From Dicyema japonicum (taxonomy: Eukaryota > Animalia > Dicyemida): a DNA stretch of 64,000 nt. The DNA lies in the NCBI GenBank assembly GCA_011109175.1, contig RDEW01000019.1, forward strand, positions 127,229 to 191,228, in the 5' to 3' direction. Made by a program: the position numbers and the translations under genes. Below are positions 6,345 to 53,095 of this stretch, piece by piece. Below the pieces are notes generated by a model, which ran no database searches, was not told the origin of the DNA, and saw nothing but the letters and a program-made list of their open reading frames with translations. Numbering within the stretch: the first letter of the stretch is position 1; the number at the start of each line of letters is the position of its first letter.

Positions 6345-6562
6345 GAGTAAGGTGTAATTTGTTTAGTATCGTAAAGGAATTCAAAATACCATTATTATTT
6401 AATAATAATAAAGATGGGGACCAAATTAAATAGGATAATAAAATAAAAAACTCGAGTAAGGTGTAATTTGTTTAGCATCGTAAAGGAATTCAAACTACCA
6501 TTATTATTTAATAATAATAAAGATGGGGACCAAATTAAATAGGATAATAAAATAAAAAACTC
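6345..6562 (+). repeat. 109-bp tandem duplication, two mismatches
   Basis: gagtaaggtgtaatttg...aaaactc occurs at 6345 and 6454. Confidence 0.9.
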
Positions 6563-7314
6563 CTAAAAAATTTCAGAAGTTTAAAATTCTCACTCAGTAA
6601 AAACAGAATCGACTTCCACCCTGGCAGTCTCCCCCAGGAAATCAAACACAAGGTAATCTTTGAAGATAAGTGGTCAAAACATATTCAGTTACGGTACTAA
6701 CGAAAAGAAGTTCTGAAACAATAGGCTCTGGAGGTCTACGCTCCAAGATCTTGTTGTCTTCAAGGATTCGTGTGGTGCGAGTAGACACAAAGTCGTGTAT
6801 ACTCTTGCTCCGTGTTTTGTCGTTATAGCTCTCAATGATGAGTTTTTACTTGTGCAGGAAGGAAAGTGATATGTACGGAATCCAGCTTGGTAAGCCATAA
6901 CTTCATCTTTATGAATTGTTTGTACGCGCTATACATTTTTTATTAGTCGTTTGAGTACACAGCTGATATAAGGACATTTGATTTTTTTTTCTTTAGTGCA
7001 AAATGATATACATGTTTGTCAACGCAGAGAGGTGGACCAAAGACGACTCTGAATATTTTAGGATGTTTGTCTACTGAAAGTAATTCAGGGATAAAATAGT
7101 CATTAAAGATTTTGATGGATTCCATAGAGTAGGAAAAATCCAGTTTGAGATGATAAGTAGGAATAGATTTCAAAAAATTGTACATTTTCTGAGGCACTTA
7201 GGACGTTTCTATTTCTTTATGCAATTATGAGATCCTCTGTGTAGGTAGAAGTCCGAAAACAAATTCATCTCTACTTCCAACAAACTTGTGGAACTAATAT
7301 GTGATTATACGGTT

Positions 7315-8701: not shown

Positions 8702-9177
8702 NNNNNNNNNNNNNNNNNNNNNNNNNNNNNNNNNNNNNNNNNNNNNNNNNNNNNNNNNNNNNNNNNNNNNNNNNNNNNNNNNNNNNNNNNNNNNNNNNNN
8801 NNNNNNNNNNNNNNNNNNNNNNNNNNNNNNNNNNNNNNNNNNNNNNNNNNNNNNNNNNNNNNNNNNNNNNNNNNNNNNNNNNNNNNNNNNNNNNNNNNNN
8901 NNNNNNNNNNNNNNNNNNNNNNNNNNNNNNNNNNNNNNNNNNNNNNNNNNNNNNNNNNNNNNNNNNNNNNNNNNNNNNNNNNNNNNNNNNNNNNNNNNNN
9001 NNNNNNNNNNNNNNNNNNNNNNNNNNNNNNNNNNNNNNNNNNNNNNNNNNNNNNNNNNNNNNNNNNNNNNNNNNNNNNNNNNNNNNNNNNNNNNNNNNNN
9101 NNNNNNNNNNNNNNNNNNNNNNNNNNNNNNNNNNNNNNNNNNNNNNNNNNNNNNNNNNNNNNNNNNNNNNNNNNNNN
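8702..9177. other. Assembly gap (476 N)
   Basis: Run of N. Confidence 1.
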
Positions 9178-17075: not shown

Positions 17076-17571
17076 GAGACTTTTATGCCACAATAAAACA
17101 TCTGCATACAGATAAATTCACTCATCATGATCGTCAATCCAGAGACATATCTGAATCTGCTAGTGAAGTCTGAAATTATGTCCACGACGTCGACACCCTG
17201 CATCTGGTTCAGCAAGTAGAGGAAAAAAGTTAGTATCCGACAGTCAACTGTTAAAATTAAACCTCAAAAGAGGCACAAAAATTAGATATTCATTGATATC
17301 CCTACACACGGAAATCTTTAGTAAAAGGCGAAAGATTTATGCGTTATGTGTAGAAAACAGAACAAAATTTTATGTCAAGAATCGAGCAGAATTTGTATTA
17401 CATTATGATTTTATATATGATTACTGGATGCTTTAAGAATATAATATTTATAATAAAACTCATTTTGAATAAATAATATTTTATTAGTTATGGTAAATAA
17501 TTATTTTAAATAATGAATCAATTTAATTCATTAATAATAATAATAATATTCCCAACTTCATCAACATGTAC

Positions 17572-18622
17572 ACTCCACAGGGTTACCCATTATCACCTAT
17601 ATTTTTTGTCATATACCTTGAAGCTGCTTTACGGAAGTCAAAACCGATAATGGGTGAAAAGACAAACATTATTGCGTATGCTGACGACGTGTACACTCCA
17701 CAGGGTTACCCATTATCACCTATACTTTTTGTCATATACCTTGAAGCTGCTTTACGGAAGTCAAAACCGATAATGGGTGAAAAGACAAACATTATTGCGT
17801 ATGCTGACGACGTAGACTTTACTTCAAATGACAAAATACCGCTCACCCGCTTGATGGAAGAAGTGTCTGGAAGACTAGCCGAATGGTTCCTAACAGTAAA
17901 TCCGGACAAGACTGACGTAACTGAACTCAAGAGGGAAGAAACAAGGACAGAGGAGTACTGGCGCAAATGCAAAAAGCTTGGCTCCCTCCTAGGAGACCAT
18001 GAAGAAATTACGAGAAGGAAAACCCTAGCACAAACTGCCCTCTCCAGATTAAAGAACATCTGGCTTCACAAAACGGGCCTTGACATTATAACAAAAACTC
18101 GATTATACAACTCGCTAGTGAATCCCATACTACTATATAACGTTGGTACCTGGGCCTGCTCAAGAAATGAACTGAAGAGGCTTAATGCGTTTCATAGAGA
18201 CCAACTACGGCATATGATGTTCGAAAGAAGTGATACGAGGATGTCATCTAATCTTCTCTATAAGAGGACGAAGACCTCAGAAATTTCTAATGAGATTCTG
18301 GATACACGATGGAGGCTTTTCGGCCATATTCTGCGACTGGACCTAGATGCCCCCGCGAACGTAGCCATGGAGGATTACTTCATGTTGGAGGCCCCCCGTT
18401 TCCGTGGTCGCCCAAGGACGACACTGGCAGTCGTTCTCGACGAGGACCTTAAAGAAATGGGACGGCATCTTGCAAGTGGAGAGGATCTGGACTGGTTGCG
18501 CGCTGCGGCTTTGAATAGGAGGAAGTGGATGAAACTAACCAGTGATTTGCTAACTCGTGTTGCACATGCTTTGTCAAGTCCTATGACATAGCGATAAGTG
18601 CTTATAATAATAATAATAATAA
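17572..18622 (+). mobile_element. 5'-truncated RTE LINE with open RT ORF, (TAA)n tail, 11-bp TSD and a 123-bp internal duplication
   Basis: PQG.PLSP.LF.IYLE, YADD, LGSLLGD and WRLFGH motifs; flanked by tcaacatgtac (17561-17571) and tcagcatgtac (18623-18633). Confidence 0.93.
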
Positions 18623-21420: not shown

Positions 21421-23549
21421 AGGAGACAGATATAATAAAAAAATTTAATTCCATTATTGGACAAAGATGTGTCCTCAAAAATGTTAGTGTCTTTCATTTA
21501 ATTATTAGAAAGTAATTTTGAATTCAGACATTAATGAATGTTCTTTGGGGCATTCAACATGTATCAAAACAAATTAAATATAAATTTATACAAAGTTTTA
21601 ATAAAAATTTGATGAGATATCTATCAGAAAATTCTACTAGGAATTAGAAACAATTCTTAAAATAACTTTTACGTACAACACAACAGCACATGCTACAACC
21701 AATGAAACGGCGTTCGAAAAATTCGAGACGCTTATTTTGCAATCAACCGAAGGGATGGACGTTGAAGATAATTCAAATGTGCATGGTACATTTTCCTTAA
21801 ACTATGTTAGAAATAACGAATAACGTTGACCTAACTTTCTGTCCACCATACCTTAATTCATCCTATTTCAAAAAAATGAATAAAAATGTATGTTCATCAG
21901 TCAAAATATGGCTTAAAATAAGAGATAAAATATTTTTATAATTAATTTTTTGGTTCGCATGGTAAAGGATTATGGAACCCGTCATTAAGACTTAACCGTT
22001 TATGAACCAGCTTAAATTACTAATATTTTATAATCGCCTGTAAATATTAATAATTTATATACTCAAAGAACCTTACTTTTCAGTATCAGACGAGCCCACG
22101 CTTCGAAGAAATGAAACCTCAGCTTTAGTTGAGCAAGAGAATCGAAATGGCAACAAATGATATTACTAAAAATACAGTAAACATTTTGAATCTGCCATTT
22201 TTGGACTTTTTTGAGTATTCAAGTTAGCGGAGAAAATTGATTTTTAATTTAATAAGTTTTCTGTATTTGAGAATATAAGTAAATCAAATAAATAACATAG
22301 TAAGCCTAAGAGTTCCAGTTAGCCGCCGGGTTCCTTCAATTAAAAAGACCGAAAAAGCGATTTGGAACCTAGAATCCCCGAAGTTTCGATGAGAACATAC
22401 TTAAAACGAACTTTCATCCAAGGTTATCTTTAAGGGTTTCGGCCTTAGTTGAGCCCGATCCTGGGTGATTAGATAATTGAAATTAAAGAGGAGGATCACT
22501 TATTTGTCTCATTTGCTGTGGAGACGTCTCCTCGCCCCACAAAACCTAGTCCTTTGGATCAGTTCAGTGATCAAAAAGGTCACCAAGGATCCACGCGAGA
22601 CGGGTGGCTTCGAGAGCGTGTCTTGATATCTATCGTCAGGAAGAATTAGTTTGGGGTAATTATCAAGATTAAAAAAGATATTGGATTAAAATTCTTGTAA
22701 TTGAAAAATTATTTGAATCAGTATTTAATCTTCTATTAAACCCAAATAGTAATAAAATGAACAACATTAACAATCACATGCCCAACGTTAAAATTTACTC
22801 ATTTCACAGCGACAATTCTTTGTGAGGATGCATCTTCAAACTAAACTGCAATTAGAAAAGGCTTTAAAAATCATTAAGTACTCATAAAACTCATAGACAA
22901 GCTTAGGCATATTTAAGAGGATGTCTAGGAAAACTTGATTGTCTCAGAGACTCATTAATTGGTAAGAAACATTAGCAATTTCAGAATACATTAATTAGCC
23001 AAATTGAGTGAACTATGATTGTGAAACAATAGCAACACAATGGACCAATTCACAATGGAATAATTAATGGTTCTTTAGTCTACAAATTCAGCAAAAATGA
23101 AAGTTTATATGAACCACACTTTAAGACAGTTTGAAATGAGTAGGATTTATTATTCAACAGAACCACGACTGACTGGATTTATTTTAAAATTGATTAGTAA
23201 AGTGGAGAAAATCGTTTAAATCATATTAGTCCTGTCTGAACATGTTAATTAAAAGTTGATTTGAAAAAAAGTTAATAAAAATTTTATGATTAATTTATTT
23301 AAATTTAAATTAAAAAATTAATTTATTAATAATAATTATAAAGCGGAGAACCCATTAACAATAAAATATGGTTGCTTGGATCAATCTCCAAACGGTAACA
23401 GTATCTATCAACAATATCTATGCAACTATTTCTATGTTACTTAATTATTTTATCGCCTCAACAGCATAGTAATTTGTCCGCAATACAAAAGCGTGAAATT
23501 TATTTTTTTGAAAATCATGATTATTACAGGTTAAAAAAGACCCGCCACC

Positions 23550-25585
23550 ATGCAACCAAATATGTCGAATTTATCGATAGTAACTTAGATGGTAAATGTG
23601 TAGGGAAGATCAACCCCCAAATTTGTGAAATCAAACTACCCACGTGATCGTTAGTCATTCCAACATTCCGAAATCCATTACATAAAACAATGTACAACTC
23701 GCATGCTTATTTATCAGTAACAACGTCTCCGATGGATAGTAAACAAAATTATTCCAAAGTGGATTTTTTCCCAGACAAAGGGTTTGAAATAAAATTATTT
23801 AGAATTTCATTCGGCCAACCAATGATTTACTCAAACCCATTGTATCAACAGGTAATTAATATTTTGGATATTCAGGACACATTCTACAATTTTCACAGTG
23901 AAATGCGCTACACACAAAGTCCAAGTTTGCAATACGACGACAACTACCAACGTTATTCCTCCTTATATTCACATTCCTTAATAGAAACGGTCTTTATGAG
24001 TAAATTATTTCAGGCCAATTGGCTTCTTGAAATCTACAAAACAGCTGAAGGAGTCAGTCTACCACGATGCTTTCTTTACTCCAACTACAGAGGATTCTGC
24101 ACTGAAAGCTATCATCCTCAAATGAATCAAGCATCGTTCGGAAAACTAATTCGTACAGTTTTTCCATTATTAAAAACGAAGAGACTTGGAACGAGGTTTT
24201 ATGAGTTTAGTATTGCAAGGGACACTCCAAATACCATTATTACGGAATAAAAATAAAAATTGGGTCAAAATTAAACAGGATAAAGGACGAATTTCAAACT
24301 CCTCAAAGACTTCAAGCATTTAAGATTCTCACTCAGTTGTTTATGTAAAATTTTTTAGGCCGAACTACAAGAACCCCTTTTTAAAAAAAGTTATTTTATT
24401 CGGAAAATCTGGATCGAATTTTTTGAACAAAAATACCGCCATGACAAGAAGAGTTTCAGGAGTTTCAACGGAAATGCCACCTTTCGGGCAAATTGACGTT
24501 AGAAAAATAACCGTAAATATTAACAAACTCCACGAACTCGTGAATATTTTTCAGAATCTCTACAGAAAACACTGCAATGTAAAAATACATGAAAATCTCT
24601 AGGAAATCAAAGAAGCAGTGAATCAATTTAATTTCAAACTCGTGCCAACGTTTTGGACGGATTTTTGGGGAAATTTTGTAAAGAAAAGGTATTTTGCTGT
24701 TAATATTAGAAATTCCTTCGAAAACATGATAGAACTTGTAAATTCTGATGAGGTTGTGGATTATATATTCACTTCCGATTGAATTTTATACCAGCATCTC
24801 GTTTCCTTACTGATTCCTGACATTTTAGAAGAAGCCCCATGTAGCTTTCGGAATTAAATTTTAGTTTCTCAAACCCAAAATATCAGAACATTTTCCAAAT
24901 CTCTGGAGATCAAGCTATCCTCCGCCTGACGTCATGTGAGTTTAGCGAAAGACCTGTTTCTAAAAAGGTTGTCTTTTCCGAAGATTTTTAGATCAATGTG
25001 GTTTCTGGGTTTGGCAAAACGCTAAAAAGATATACTAAGCTTCAACACCTTTTTCAATCTACACAGGAGATTTTCAGTGATCAATCACTGCTCAGTGAAA
25101 TGTGCTCAGACATCTCAAAAATTGACCTCGGAGAAATTCAGGTTATTACATTTTTTTATTGCAGGATCAATTGTACTGGATTTCAAACTGCAAGGCTGAT
25201 TTGTACAGAAAATCCAAACTGATTTTATTACTGGACTTTCCCAAATCTCAAAATCGACCAATGGACCACGTGGTTGGAAGATGTTGTCAACATTGTTCTC
25301 GTACCATTCACATCAGAAATTGAGTTTTAAAAAGCGGGGGAGCAACTAATGCTCAAATAGTCGGCCCACATGTAATTGTTAACATAAGTTAAGGTTCATA
25401 ATTATTTGGGATTTGACCTTACGATCTTGTCTCACCTTTGGGTCCCTTCATTTGATGAGGTTATTTTTCGACGACTACATAAAATATTTGGTCGAGAGCA
25501 AAATCGCAGAGATCAGGAAAACAACACTCATTGAGTTTATTACAGAAAATAGACAAATATTTTCATTCATTTATGTTAGATAAAT
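23550..25585 (+). pseudogene. RFX: RFX-family transcription factor gene (DBD plus dimerisation domains) with nonsense codons and single-base deletions; 5' boundary uncertain
   Basis: WLLEIYKTAEGVSLPR...ASFGKLIRTVFPLLKTKRLGTR/GHSKYHYYGI; LYRKHC, ILYQHLVSLLIPDIL, TLKRYTKLQHL, DLTLRSCLTFGSLHLMR; about ten 21-24 nt GT-AG introns; stops at 24780, 25328, 25358. Confidence 0.85.
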
Positions 25586-26109
25586 TTAAATAATGAAAGT
25601 GGCCAAGGATCTCTTGAAATTGACCAAAATATTTGATAAAAATATGTAATTCATTTTTTTCTTAACTTTCTTAATCAGTTTTTTACAGTAAACACTAAAC
25701 TCTCTTAAATAGATTGATAAGTTGCGGGACAAATAATTTTGTAACGTAACGCTTGGTTGCTGTGGATAACCGCTACTCTCTAAGCATATGTAAATATCCT
25801 CTATTCTGTATAATAGAAACGTAAGAACCTTGGAGGACGAAGGATATTGTTTCAAGCTTTTTTGAAATCCGATTCCTTAGATGACCCAGGAATTCGAGGT
25901 GTAAGGGGACTGGATGTTCGAATTCCAGCTGAACAAACAAAACATCCCCGAGTATTAACCGTTCTTGTATAGATTGTCACTTATCGTTTGACGTTAAGCA
26001 GACTTATCCTTATAACGCAATATTTCGACTTTTTGGGCAATCGTAAGTCATGTGTAATATCAACAGAAGCAGTCCAACCCATGCATGTTTGTAATTATTT
26101 TATTATTTT

Positions 26110-26504: not shown

Positions 26505-29100
26505 TTTAAGCACTCCCGGGAAATCAAAAATTAATTAGATTAATTAAGTTCCCCTTGTGCCACGTCCAGTATCCTCCCACACATCCTCTTCCATGTTCCA
26601 TGTCCCACAGTTGTATGTCAGGACTGGAACCACGAATGTTTTATACAATTTTAGCTTTGTATTCGTAGTTATGCTCTTCTTAGAACGCCAGATAGTTAAG
26701 AATTTTTTATATGCAGCAGTGGAAAGGATTTTTCTGTGGGTAACATCTTCTGAGTCTCCAAGTAGTGAACCAACTTTTTTATGCCTTCTCCATGATTCAT
26801 CGTAAGTGCGTACAACTCGTACAAGTTTTGTATATTCAGTTTTTTCTTGGTTGACAACTAAGAACCATTTAGAAAAGACATTTGGTAAGTTCTTGAGAAC
26901 GTGATGAAGAATTTCAACATCTTCAGAAACAAAGTCAAGATCGTCTGCATATATTAACTCGATTATTTTGTTGTTCTCAATTAAAGGCCTGAAATCTCTC
27001 AGTGCAGCCTCCAGGTAGATTATGAATAGAACTGGTGACAAAGAGTCTCCTTGCGGAATTCCACGTGAAGTATAAAAGAATTCTGAAGTAGTTTTTCCGA
27101 GTTTGGTTGCTAGTTGCGTATTCTGCAGTAGTTTTTGTATAATTTTGACATCATCCGTTGTTAGGAAGCTTGTGAGTACTTCAAGAAGTTTGCCTCTATG
27201 AACCGAGTCAAACGCTCTGGACATGTCTATTCCGAGAACATCTATGCACTTTTTATATTTTTGGCATAGAGCACTTGACCATCTGTGTGTCCAAATGACA
27301 TCGGCAGTGGATCTGCCTGACCGGAAACCACTTTGTCCTGGTGACAGAAAATACTCCACCTTGTCTTTGATTCTTTCCAATGTAATAATTGACAAGATTT
27401 TTCGCAGCGTAGTTAGTAGGATGATTGGTCTTAGGTTGGAAAGGGGCCCTTTGGGTTTTCCCGGTTATTGCAGTGGAATTAACCAACCCTTGCCAATGTC
27501 TAACGTAGTGTTTTCTTCAAATATTTTGTTGAGTATATTGGTAATGATTGTTACCAACTTCACTGTGGCATACTTTATAAGTTCGGCTGGGATATTCTCT
27601 GGTTTTGCCGATCTGTCATTTTTCAATTTTTTAATTGCATCCAGTGTTTCTTGTGTATTTATTGGGATGTCCAAACTATGGTTGACTTGTGCACCAAATT
27701 TATAGCCTATTTCGTTGTCCCAGTTGAGCATATGATAGTAATAAGCAGATATAGTAGCTGCTTTGTCCTTTTTATCGATAATTATTCTGCCAAAGATGTC
27801 ATTGATTATTATGGGGCTTGCACTCTTTTTCTTATTAATTAATTGAATAGCTTTGAACATTTTCACTCCATCTTTATATTTTTCAATGTCTTCAATTTGT
27901 TTTTCTATTTCTTTAGCCGTTAGGGATTTCTGAGTTTGCTTGATTTTTAATAATGTTCGGTTTCGTTGTTGCCGAAGTTCCTTGGCCTTTTCTGGAGACC
28001 TTGAGTTTTCTATCTTCAATCTCAAGGCTTTCTGGTTTTCTGATAGGACGCAAATATCATGATTGTAAAATTTACGGGGTTTTGTAATACTTCCCAACAC
28101 ATCACATGCTGTACCTTTTATCGACTTTGTGACTTTGTCCCAAATAATATGAACAGGTTTAGTTTCGTCGATATCATTAAGTTCAAGATTTAGTTGATAC
28201 GCATATTTCTGTTGAGTTGACTTGTCATGTAATAATTGGATATCATATTGCTCCTGCTTTTTATTGGAAGGTGTTTTCATTTGGTTATGGACTTTGTATA
28301 GTCCAATGCGAGTATGATCACTATTTGTCTCTAATCCTCCATATGACCTGGAGTCTACGAGGAGATGTTTGTGACCTCGTCTGCATAGTATGTAGTCAAT
28401 TTGATTATATATTTTTATGTAATTTCCTTGCAAATCCTTCCTAGTTCCAGTCCACGTCGTCTTGTGTCTCGCTTGGTGACAAAATGCCGTATTGCACAAA
28501 AACAGATCCAAGGAAGTGCAAAAGTGGATTAATGCCATTCCGGGCGTGTTTCGCCGATTTCTTCCATGAGATCCGATACAAGTTTCTCCAGATCTGGCTT
28601 TCCCTGCTTTGGCATTCCAGTCCCCGGCAATTAAGCAAAAATATGAAGAACTGATAGTGTTGTAAACCCTTATGAGGGCGGAGTAGAATTCGTCTAGTTC
28701 TTCTGGATTGGCAGATGCCCTGATTCCAGTCGGGGCGTATATGTTGATGATTGTCACTGTAGAGTTTGGTTTGCTTCCCCACCAAAATTGCAGTACCGCA
28801 ATCCTGTCTGTAACGACCCACATCCGAGATATACGACTATACAATGTGTGATGAATAGCAAATCCAAGTCCATAATGACGACACGTTGTTGGAAGGGTAA
28901 TCAAATGATAATTTCCCACCCGCATGCATGTGTTGTCAGTTATTTTTGTTTCCTGTAGGCAGCATACTGATACCTTATAGTGATCCAAATCAAGTTTCTT
29001 GTATGTTGGATTGAGTGCTCTTACATTCAGGGTACCCACAGAAAAAGGGCAGTTAGATATTAGACGTGAGAAAGACATATGTGCTATAGAGGGACGTCAC
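26505..29100 (-). mobile_element. Near full-length RTE-clade LINE (APE + RT), one frameshift near 27480, C-terminal internal deletion
   Basis: GTLNVR, LQETK, INIYAPT, IAGDWNAK, NQIDYI and SDH APE motifs; QSGFRSGRST, DMSRAFDSV, GIPQGDSLSP and YADD RT motifs. Confidence 0.95.
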
Positions 29101-51099: not shown

Positions 51100-53095
51100 A
51101 TAAATTAAAAAAATCCGTCATATTATGTTTTCCGCCAAGTTAATTGCCTTTGATAAATGTGGAGGAGGAATTCGTCCTATTGCTGTTGGGTTTGTTTTTC
51201 GTCGACTGGCTTCTAAACTTGCTAGCAGAGCAATCCTTCCGATGCTTGTCAAACAACTGCGACCAACCCAAGTAGGGGTCGGTACTCCTGGTGGATGTGA
51301 GGCGGCGGTTCATGCCGTTCGGATGTTTACTGGAAACAGAACGAACATGCCTTGTGTGGTCCTCAAGATTGACATAAAAAACGCCTTCAATACCATACGG
51401 CGCGATGTAATTTTGGAAGATTGTCTTACCCATTACCCGTCTATATATAATTATGTTCATTGTTCGTATGGAAAACCGTCCAGTCTTGTACATGGGAAAT
51501 ACTTCATTCCCTCGTCGTGTGGAGTTCAGCAAGGAGACCCACTAGGACCGGCATTGTTCTGCCTCGGTGTCGACCGTGTCATGAGATGCCTTACTACTCC
51601 GCTGAACGTGTGGTATTTGGATGATTGCACCCTGGGAGGTCATCCTAACAATGTATATGACTGTCTACAGAGATTACTAACCCAATTGGATACGCTTGGT
51701 TTAAAGCTAAACGCATCCAAATGCGAAATTGTTAATTATGGATTCTCCCGATATGAATGGAATCGAATCCTATTAATGTTTCGGGGATTATTCCTAAAAT
51801 ATCGGAAATCGAGCCGGATTATTTGGAAATACTTGGATGCTTTCTGGCTGAAACTGGAATTAACGACACTCTGTTGGCTAAAGAACAGCAACTAAGAAAA
51901 ACTTTTTTACGCCTTGGGATGCTGGATGCACATACCTCTCTTTTTCTCATAAAAAACGCTTTATTCACGCAGAAATTAAATTACGTCCTTCGAGGAGCTC
52001 CATGTTACCTGAAAATGCAACAACTCGGGGCGATTGACTCCCTATTCCGGTCTACGACCGAACGTATTACTAATGTCGAATTCGACGAACAAGGATGGGA
52101 ACAAGCAACCTTGCCCGTTCGCTTTGGTGGACTCGGAATTCTCTCACCATCTGATTTACACCCGGCATATCAATCCTCATTGGACTCCAATCAGAATTTG
52201 ATCATGATGATTCTCCAGCTCCCATCAGAGTCGTCAAAGATCGAAGATTTGGTACACCCTAAAGTCAAACAACTCGGGCAGAGAGACCTTTATGAGTCTG
52301 TTTGCGAGGATAAATACGAGAGGCTTTTGAAAATATCTAACCAACACCGACGAGCCTGTCTTTTAACTGCAAGATGCGAGTGGAGCGGGGCTTGGATCAA
52401 TGCCCTACCCATTGGAAACGTGGGAACTCACCTAGACGATGAAACGGTCCGCACCGGAGTCTCCATCAGACTTGGATTGAAAGTTTGTCAACCCCATGAG
52501 TGCCGATGCGGCCGGAAGGTCGACTGCTATGGACATCATGCCCTTTCTTGTCGAAAAAGCGCAGGTCGATTCGCTAGACACAAGGCTATAAATGAAGTGG
52601 TGAAGCGCGCCCTCGAGTTGGCGGGATACCCATCCATTCTAGAGCCAACGGGCTTGAGTAGGGATGATGGGAAGCGACCCGATGGAATTACTGTCTTCCC
52701 CTTCTCTCGGGGCAAATGCTTAATTTGGGATGCTGCCTGTACTGACAGCTTTTCCCAGTCGAAACTTTTGAGGTCGGCAATGAAAGCGGGAGAGGCGCCC
52801 GTTTATATGAAAACTCAAAAATAAAGAAATACAGCAGCCTCCTAAACCGTTTCCATGTACAGCCAGTGGTCGTCGAGACGAGCGGAGTCTTTGGCCCCAA
52901 GACGGTCTCTTTCCTTAGAGCACTTGGGTGTCTATTGACCAAAGCCTCGAGGGAGCGTCGGGAAACCGAGTGGCTTTTCCAAAGGATATCCCTGGCAGTA
53001 GTCAGAGGTAACAGCCACTCGATCATATCCGCTGGACTTTAGAACGATTTTATTGTTATAAATAAATTTAAAGTAATTAAAAAAAAAAAAAAAAA
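51100..53095 (+). mobile_element. 5'-truncated CRE-clade retrotransposon: RT, CCHC knuckle, REL endonuclease, poly(A) tail; two frameshifts
   Basis: GGIRPIAVG, QVGVGTPGGCEAAVH, KIDIKNAFN, GVQQGDPLGP, WYLDD; CRCGRKVDCYGHHALSC; DGKRPDG...IWDAAC; A-run 53079-53095. Confidence 0.93.

Follow-up and report, generated by a model that had tools for sequence, protein, structure and literature searches.

The RFX locus at positions 23550-25585 of the window (by which we mean the whole 64,000-nucleotide stretch of Dicyema japonicum DNA that was analyzed) is best explained as a non-processed, that is DNA-duplicated, pseudogene of the RFX1-3 type, an old duplicate that was long under selection and was disabled fairly recently; a rough probability of 0.85 is attached to this reading. 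When the assembly sequences are compared by codon alignment, the window copy is found to have four premature stop codons and four 1-nt deletions relative to a paralogue elsewhere in the genome, on C356. In this ciliated animal the C356 paralogue presumably supplies the RFX function, perhaps together with a third, divergent RFX gene on C46. A first-pass annotation, made from the letters of the window, had described a gene in the course of decay, and the stops and deletions bear this out; a dead duplicate was one of the alternatives that it listed, and it is the one favored by the existence of the C356 paralogue with shared introns and by the location of the lesions on the window copy.

The gene model of the window copy was set by coordinates, with the splice dinucleotides checked by assertion at every intron, and consists of 14 exons with about 584 codons, together with 13 introns, 21-26 nt long, that all have GT...AG ends. 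The RFX parts of the gene, in the DNA-binding domain (DBD) and in the B, C, and dimerization domains (BCD), can be recognized with Pfam profiles. The first part of the DBD scores 70.8-71.5 bits with PF02257 (RFX_DNA_binding), for which the curated cut-off is 27 bits, and it ends at the conserved intron position LGTR/G (the slash marking the intron), where the RFX fragments used as outgroups also end; the sequence for the remainder of the domain follows in a shifted frame. The BCD profile, PF25340, matches at C124:151777-152205, 152220-152600, and 152629-152739 with scores of 60.5, 61.3, and 37.9 bits, respectively, covering profile positions 1-269 and broken by stops. The B, C, and dimerization domains are typical of RFX1-4, 6, and 8, and the locus would belong to the RFX1-3-type subfamily, an assignment made from the DBD and BCD matches and not by a tree. 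The first-pass annotation was right both in recognizing an RFX gene by its domains and in stating that the tiny introns keep their GT-AG ends. A working member of the family would have a full-length open reading frame, but that of the window copy is closed by a stop at codon 27, so that the transcript, spliced as assembled, would encode a peptide of 26 residues at most.

The lesions (Table 1) were called by codon alignment of the window copy with the C356 paralogue over 584 columns, using the assembly sequence. Each of the four stops is one base away from the sense codon of the paralogue. Three of them, the TGA at 24780, the TAA at 25328, and the TAG at 25358, had been placed exactly by the first-pass annotation, and the paralogue has a sense codon at each; its list was incomplete in lacking the TAG at 23652. 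The four single-base deletions that it had suspected are also confirmed, its positions being right to within about 10 nt (25210 becomes 25199/25200 and 25244 becomes 25249/25250), but its statement that all of them lie in homopolymers holds clearly only for those at 24220 (a G run) and 25249 (an A run) and not for those at 24926, where one T stands against two, and 25199. In frameshift 1 the 5' end of exon 7 is one base short, the G run being 3 in the window copy versus 5 in the paralogue, and the wing of the DBD (GHSKYHYYG) is consequently out of frame with exon 6. A 20-nt intron 6 with GT..TG ends in the window copy, reasoned from sequence, would mend this frameshift only and was rejected because seven other lesions remain. 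The codon alignment also shows an R to W replacement in the conserved IRDLTLRS motif of the window copy, and there are four in-frame length differences between the two copies, all in unconserved parts.

Table 1. Positions of features of the RFX locus and of other elements (window coordinates unless another stretch is named)
Feature	Position	Strand	Basis or remark
5' flank in common with the C356 copy (promoter/5'UTR)	22930-23549	+	BLASTN, windowed identity
RFX1-3-type gene, probable pseudogene	23550-25585	+	natural stop TAA 25583-25585; codon alignment to C356 paralogue
Exon 1	23550-23579	+	coordinate model
Exon 2	23604-23691	+	coordinate model
Exon 3	23718-23781	+	coordinate model
Exon 4	23803-23851	+	coordinate model
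Exon 5	23876-23989	+	coordinate model
Exon 6	24014-24195	+	coordinate model
Exon 7	24220-24335	+	coordinate model
Exon 8	24359-24578	+	coordinate model
Exon 9	24603-24688	+	coordinate model
Exon 10	24710-24840	+	coordinate model
Exon 11	24865-24967	+	coordinate model
Exon 12	24992-25141	+	coordinate model
Exon 13	25165-25371	+	coordinate model
Exon 14	25394-25585	+	coordinate model
RFX winged-helix DBD, first part (exon 6)	24008-24196	+	PF02257, 70.8-71.5 bits, profile positions 3-65
RFX B, C, and dimerization domains (exons 8-14)	24549-25511	+	PF25340 BCD_RFX, exon by exon
Premature TAG, exon 2 (codon 27)	23652-23654	+	paralogue CAG
Premature TGA, exon 10 (C domain)	24780-24782	+	paralogue TGC (Cys)
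Premature TAA, exon 13	25328-25330	+	paralogue CAA
Premature TAG at conserved Trp of LKWS, dimerization domain	25358-25360	+	paralogue TGG
Intron 6 (24196-24219) and frameshift 1 at exon 6/7 junction (24195/24220)	24195-24222	+	
Frameshift 2, exon 11, 1-nt deletion	24926-24927	+	one T versus TT in paralogue
Frameshift 3, exon 13, 1-nt deletion	25199-25200	+	C lost, outside any homopolymer
Frameshift 4, exon 13, 1-nt deletion	25249-25250	+	A run 4 versus 5
Two tandem degenerate fragments, 3' part of RFX intron 6 and exon 7 (DBD wing)	6350-6438, 6459-6598	+	
Assembly gap, 476 N	8702-9177		
Single N's	10526, 10861, 15117		
LINE piece (reverse transcriptase, endonuclease)	17566-18591	+	
LINE piece (reverse transcriptase, endonuclease)	26544-29078	-	
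LINE piece (reverse transcriptase, endonuclease)	51125-51895	+	
LINE piece (reverse transcriptase, endonuclease)	L005 530-862	-	
Palindrome repeat, examples	201-214 of each of L013, L017, L019, L021, L022, L027-L029		

The paralogue lies at C356:1570167-1572088 and is 82-84% identical to the window gene, a DNA search with the whole gene as query giving 82% over the full length. The block shared by the two loci in BLASTN extends over window positions 22930-25628 and positions 8926-6121 of L005, a stretch of C356, and includes about 620 nt of 5' flank as well as the gene, ending just past the stop codon; in the flank there are patches (22971-23070 and 23395-23492) in which windowed identity reaches 87-89%. 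The C356 copy has 13 introns of 22-26 nt, all of them GT-AG and all at positions identical to those of the window copy (13/13). The introns common to both copies indicate that the duplication occurred at the level of DNA and not by retroposition; a processed pseudogene was considered for the window copy and rejected, as all 13 introns are retained. At the sites of the four stops the C356 copy has sense codons, and at none of the four deletion sites does it have a gap. Its PF02257 score is 101.8 bits, versus 70.8-71.5 for the window copy, and in the BCD the Pfam scores per exon are 42.6 versus 37.3 bits for exon 12 and 51.1 versus 42.3 for exon 14. The C356 DBD can be aligned to that of human RFX1 (PDB 1DP7) with an E value of 2.8e-26 (1e-9 for RFX5), and the 8-residue insert in the alignment with 1DP7 corresponds to an in-frame 24-nt intron at the conserved LGTR/G position. 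The C356 copy is presumably functional. The first-pass annotation had reckoned with two cases, a sole copy and an intact, near-identical paralogue elsewhere in the genome; the near-intact C356 paralogue and the third RFX locus on C46 speak against the former, whereas the latter is in essence what was found, the C356 copy being largely intact but having one -1 shift.

The search for other RFX loci that the first-pass annotation had proposed was conducted with PF02257 on 67,542,437 bases in 377 pieces and gave three loci above the cut-off, those on C356 (102 bits), in the window (C124), and on C46 (69.5 bits). The published genome of D. japonicum comprises 377 scaffolds totalling 67.5 Mb, and its introns are tiny, 38 bp on average (PMC6736024). 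The third RFX gene, at about 7800-9200 of L006 (C46:265.8-267.2 kb), is very divergent; it has the same LGTR/G intron and B/C/D-like motifs in its translation, but its match to the BCD profile is weak (E = 0.4). In addition, the two exon-7 pieces at window positions 6350-6598, 17 kb upstream of the pseudogene, are orphan remnants of an additional partial duplication. Their identity is 74-79% to the window copy and about 84% to the C356 copy, and they have a 6-nt gap at the site of the C356 shift and so give no polarity for it. A search beside the pseudogene for conserved host genes by which to gauge the local rate of indel errors found none, the neighbors being LINE pieces at both loci. Both RFX copies are flanked by LINE pieces, and the window is rich in repeats. 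When the 186-aa N-terminal/DBD frame was used in a protein word search of a database with no Dicyema protein, the best match had 55% identity, and the matches served only as outgroups; searches of the literature and of supplements for RFX in dicyemids found nothing.

A pairwise Nei-Gojobori comparison of the window and C356 copies over 568 codons, with bootstrap ranges, gives a dS of 0.57 (0.46-0.71), a dN of 0.10, and a dN/dS of 0.18 (0.13-0.23), although it should be recognized that pairwise dN/dS alone cannot tell which of the two branches has been relaxed. The values indicate an old duplication after which purifying selection acted on both copies for most of their history, and the ratio of 0.21 in the N-terminal exons 1-5 supports these exons being coding. 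The direction of change was examined with ten RFX DBD fragments of other animals as outgroups, so that the polarity test is limited to the DBD. There, 13 amino acid differences separate the copies and 7 can be polarized; in all 7 the derived state is on the window copy (two-sided sign test, p ~0.016). About 5.1% of random base changes in the coding sequence produce a stop, and the four stops would correspond to ~0.045 (0.012-0.115) neutral changes per site, a small fraction of the dS per branch of ~0.29; by this rough estimate, the window copy appears to have lost constraint in about the last sixth of its history. In the proposed course of events, a block of about 2.7 kb containing the promoter and the whole 14-exon gene would have been duplicated, purifying selection would have maintained both copies over most of the period that followed, and the window copy would then have lost constraint, gaining the four nonsense substitutions, the four 1-nt deletions, and replacements of conserved DNA-binding residues. 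We infer this order and timing from the comparison of the two copies.

The state of the C356 copy bears on a different reading, which we regard as unlikely, in which both RFX1-3-type copies are dying or disabled, that on C356 by a real, unbypassed, and fresh shift just past the DBD. The spliced frame of the C356 copy stays open over 222 codons from the ATG. It is then broken by a single -1 shift in exon 7, located in a CCC run at L005 7450/7451 (C356:1571449-1571450), where an unconserved linker joins the DBD to the B domain. With intron 7 at its canonical 24 nt, the reading frame beyond the shift is wrong and meets a stop at aa 250; the third-position pattern past the shift shows that the old frame is the coding one, and both observations are in keeping with a true lesion. 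However, acceptors 29 or 32 nt further downstream, which would give an intron 7 of 53 or 56 nt, produce a complete frame of 578-579 aa, so that a shift in a short run of an unconserved linker could be bypassed. Moreover, exons 8-14 of the C356 copy (~1.1 kb) contain no stops and no shifts, compared with six lesions in the same span of the window copy, and the polarizable changes in the DBD are all on the window branch. The C356 shift may have arisen as an error in the consensus, or it may be a true lesion, either bypassed or very recent. If both copies were in fact disabled, a multiciliated animal would make its cilia in the absence of a canonical RFX1-3 factor, depending on the divergent C46 RFX or on a truncated protein consisting of the DBD only.

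It also seems very unlikely that the window copy is a working gene whose lesions are errors of assembly or consensus. The assembly of D. japonicum merged Platanus (Illumina) and Falcon (PacBio) contigs, with no polishing step named (PMC6736024), so the single-base deletions might be errors of the consensus; two or three of the four lie in or beside short runs, and the C356 copy has one such shift as well. On the other side, the window contains single N's and a 476-N gap, as is typical when short reads are scaffolded and gaps closed, which would make errors of the PacBio type less likely here, and the frameshifts are probably real. An indel-prone consensus does not explain four independent substitutions that create stops, nor does this reading account for the 7:0 distribution of derived replacements in the DBD or the R to W change in IRDLTLRS. 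As the stop substitutions and the 7:0 asymmetry are independent of indels, the pseudogene call holds even if all of the frameshifts were errors. Repair of the message at the RNA level, by A-to-I editing or recoding, had been offered by the first-pass annotation as an alternative and is highly improbable: editing of the TAG at 25358 to TGG would give back the conserved Trp, but this is the one stop of the four at which the paralogue residue is restored, since Trp would replace the paralogue's Cys at the TGA of 24780 and its Gln at the TAG of 23652, two edits would be required to convert the TAA at 25328 to Trp, again in place of a Gln, and the four frameshifts are beyond editing.

The interpretation that the first-pass annotation had placed foremost, that the sole RFX gene of a myxozoan lacking cilia is decaying and so records regulatory loss following cilium loss, has the lesions themselves in its favor and nothing further, and we give it almost no credence. 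The organism is a dicyemid, D. japonicum, an animal with cilia on its epidermal cells and larvae (PMC6736024), and its genome contains two further RFX loci. The survey of IFT, BBS, and axonemal genes that had been recommended found IFT57, IFT46, IFT20, IFT81, BBS5, and several tektin loci, contrary to a history of cilium loss; with these genes and three RFX loci present, a unitary pseudogene was likewise rejected. X-box-like 14-mers precede the likely start codons of IFT46 (L011 2066-2079, on C2) and IFT57 (L007 947-960, on C135) by about 10-20 nt, which also argues against the decay of a regulator after cilium loss. A degenerate X-box pattern has 3 matches in the 24 kb of seven ciliary loci versus 0 in 84 kb of other DNA, a suggestive enrichment with p ~0.01 by a hand estimate on a small sample. 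These sites suggest that a link between RFX, the X-box, and the ciliary genes may still be alive in D. japonicum.

A genome-wide excess of X-boxes was also considered as a sign of a live regulon. The strict palindrome GTTNCCATGGNAAC has 60 matches in the genome versus 4 for the reversed control, but 15 of the 20 sites that were fetched belong to one repeat family; the excess is thus no evidence of regulation, and the regulon interpretation was rejected. The repeat, which is dispersed and has a perfect X-box-like palindrome (GTTACCATGGAAAC) in a constant position, is the source of most of the 60 matches; its right flank is common to the copies, and its left flank is of two kinds. It may represent an RFX site carried by a transposon, or a promoter present in repeated form.

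If the duplicated-pseudogene reading is correct, the reduced genome of D. japonicum, with 5,012 predicted genes, long kept two RFX1-3-type paralogues and is now losing one of them. This would be a snapshot of ongoing gene loss in a parasite and has little import beyond annotation. The analysis does correct a misidentification, the animal being a dicyemid and not a myxozoan, and it removes a tempting but wrong account in which a regulator decays after the loss of cilia. Possibly more useful to specialists are the number of RFX genes in a dicyemid, the X-box-like sites at IFT46 and IFT57, and the repeat with an X-box-like palindrome.

The window copy resembles RFX1/2/3-type factors (human RFX1-3, DAF-19 of Caenorhabditis elegans, and dRfx of Drosophila) in having the winged-helix DBD, the BCD, and the LGTR/G intron, but it differs from them in being a non-working copy and in that the protein would have about 580 aa, with no recognizable activation domain, and be encoded by a gene with introns of 21-26 nt. 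Like other non-processed pseudogenes, it has copied introns and 5' flank, disabling substitutions and small deletions, and a functional-looking parent or sister gene elsewhere in the genome. Rather than being dead on arrival, the window copy is old (dS ~0.57), was long selected (dN/dS 0.18), and was lost later. Unitary pseudogenes that mark the loss of a trait share with it a recognizable gene and fresh-looking lesions, but in those cases no paralogue is left and the trait has disappeared, in contrast to the ciliated D. japonicum with its surviving paralogue.
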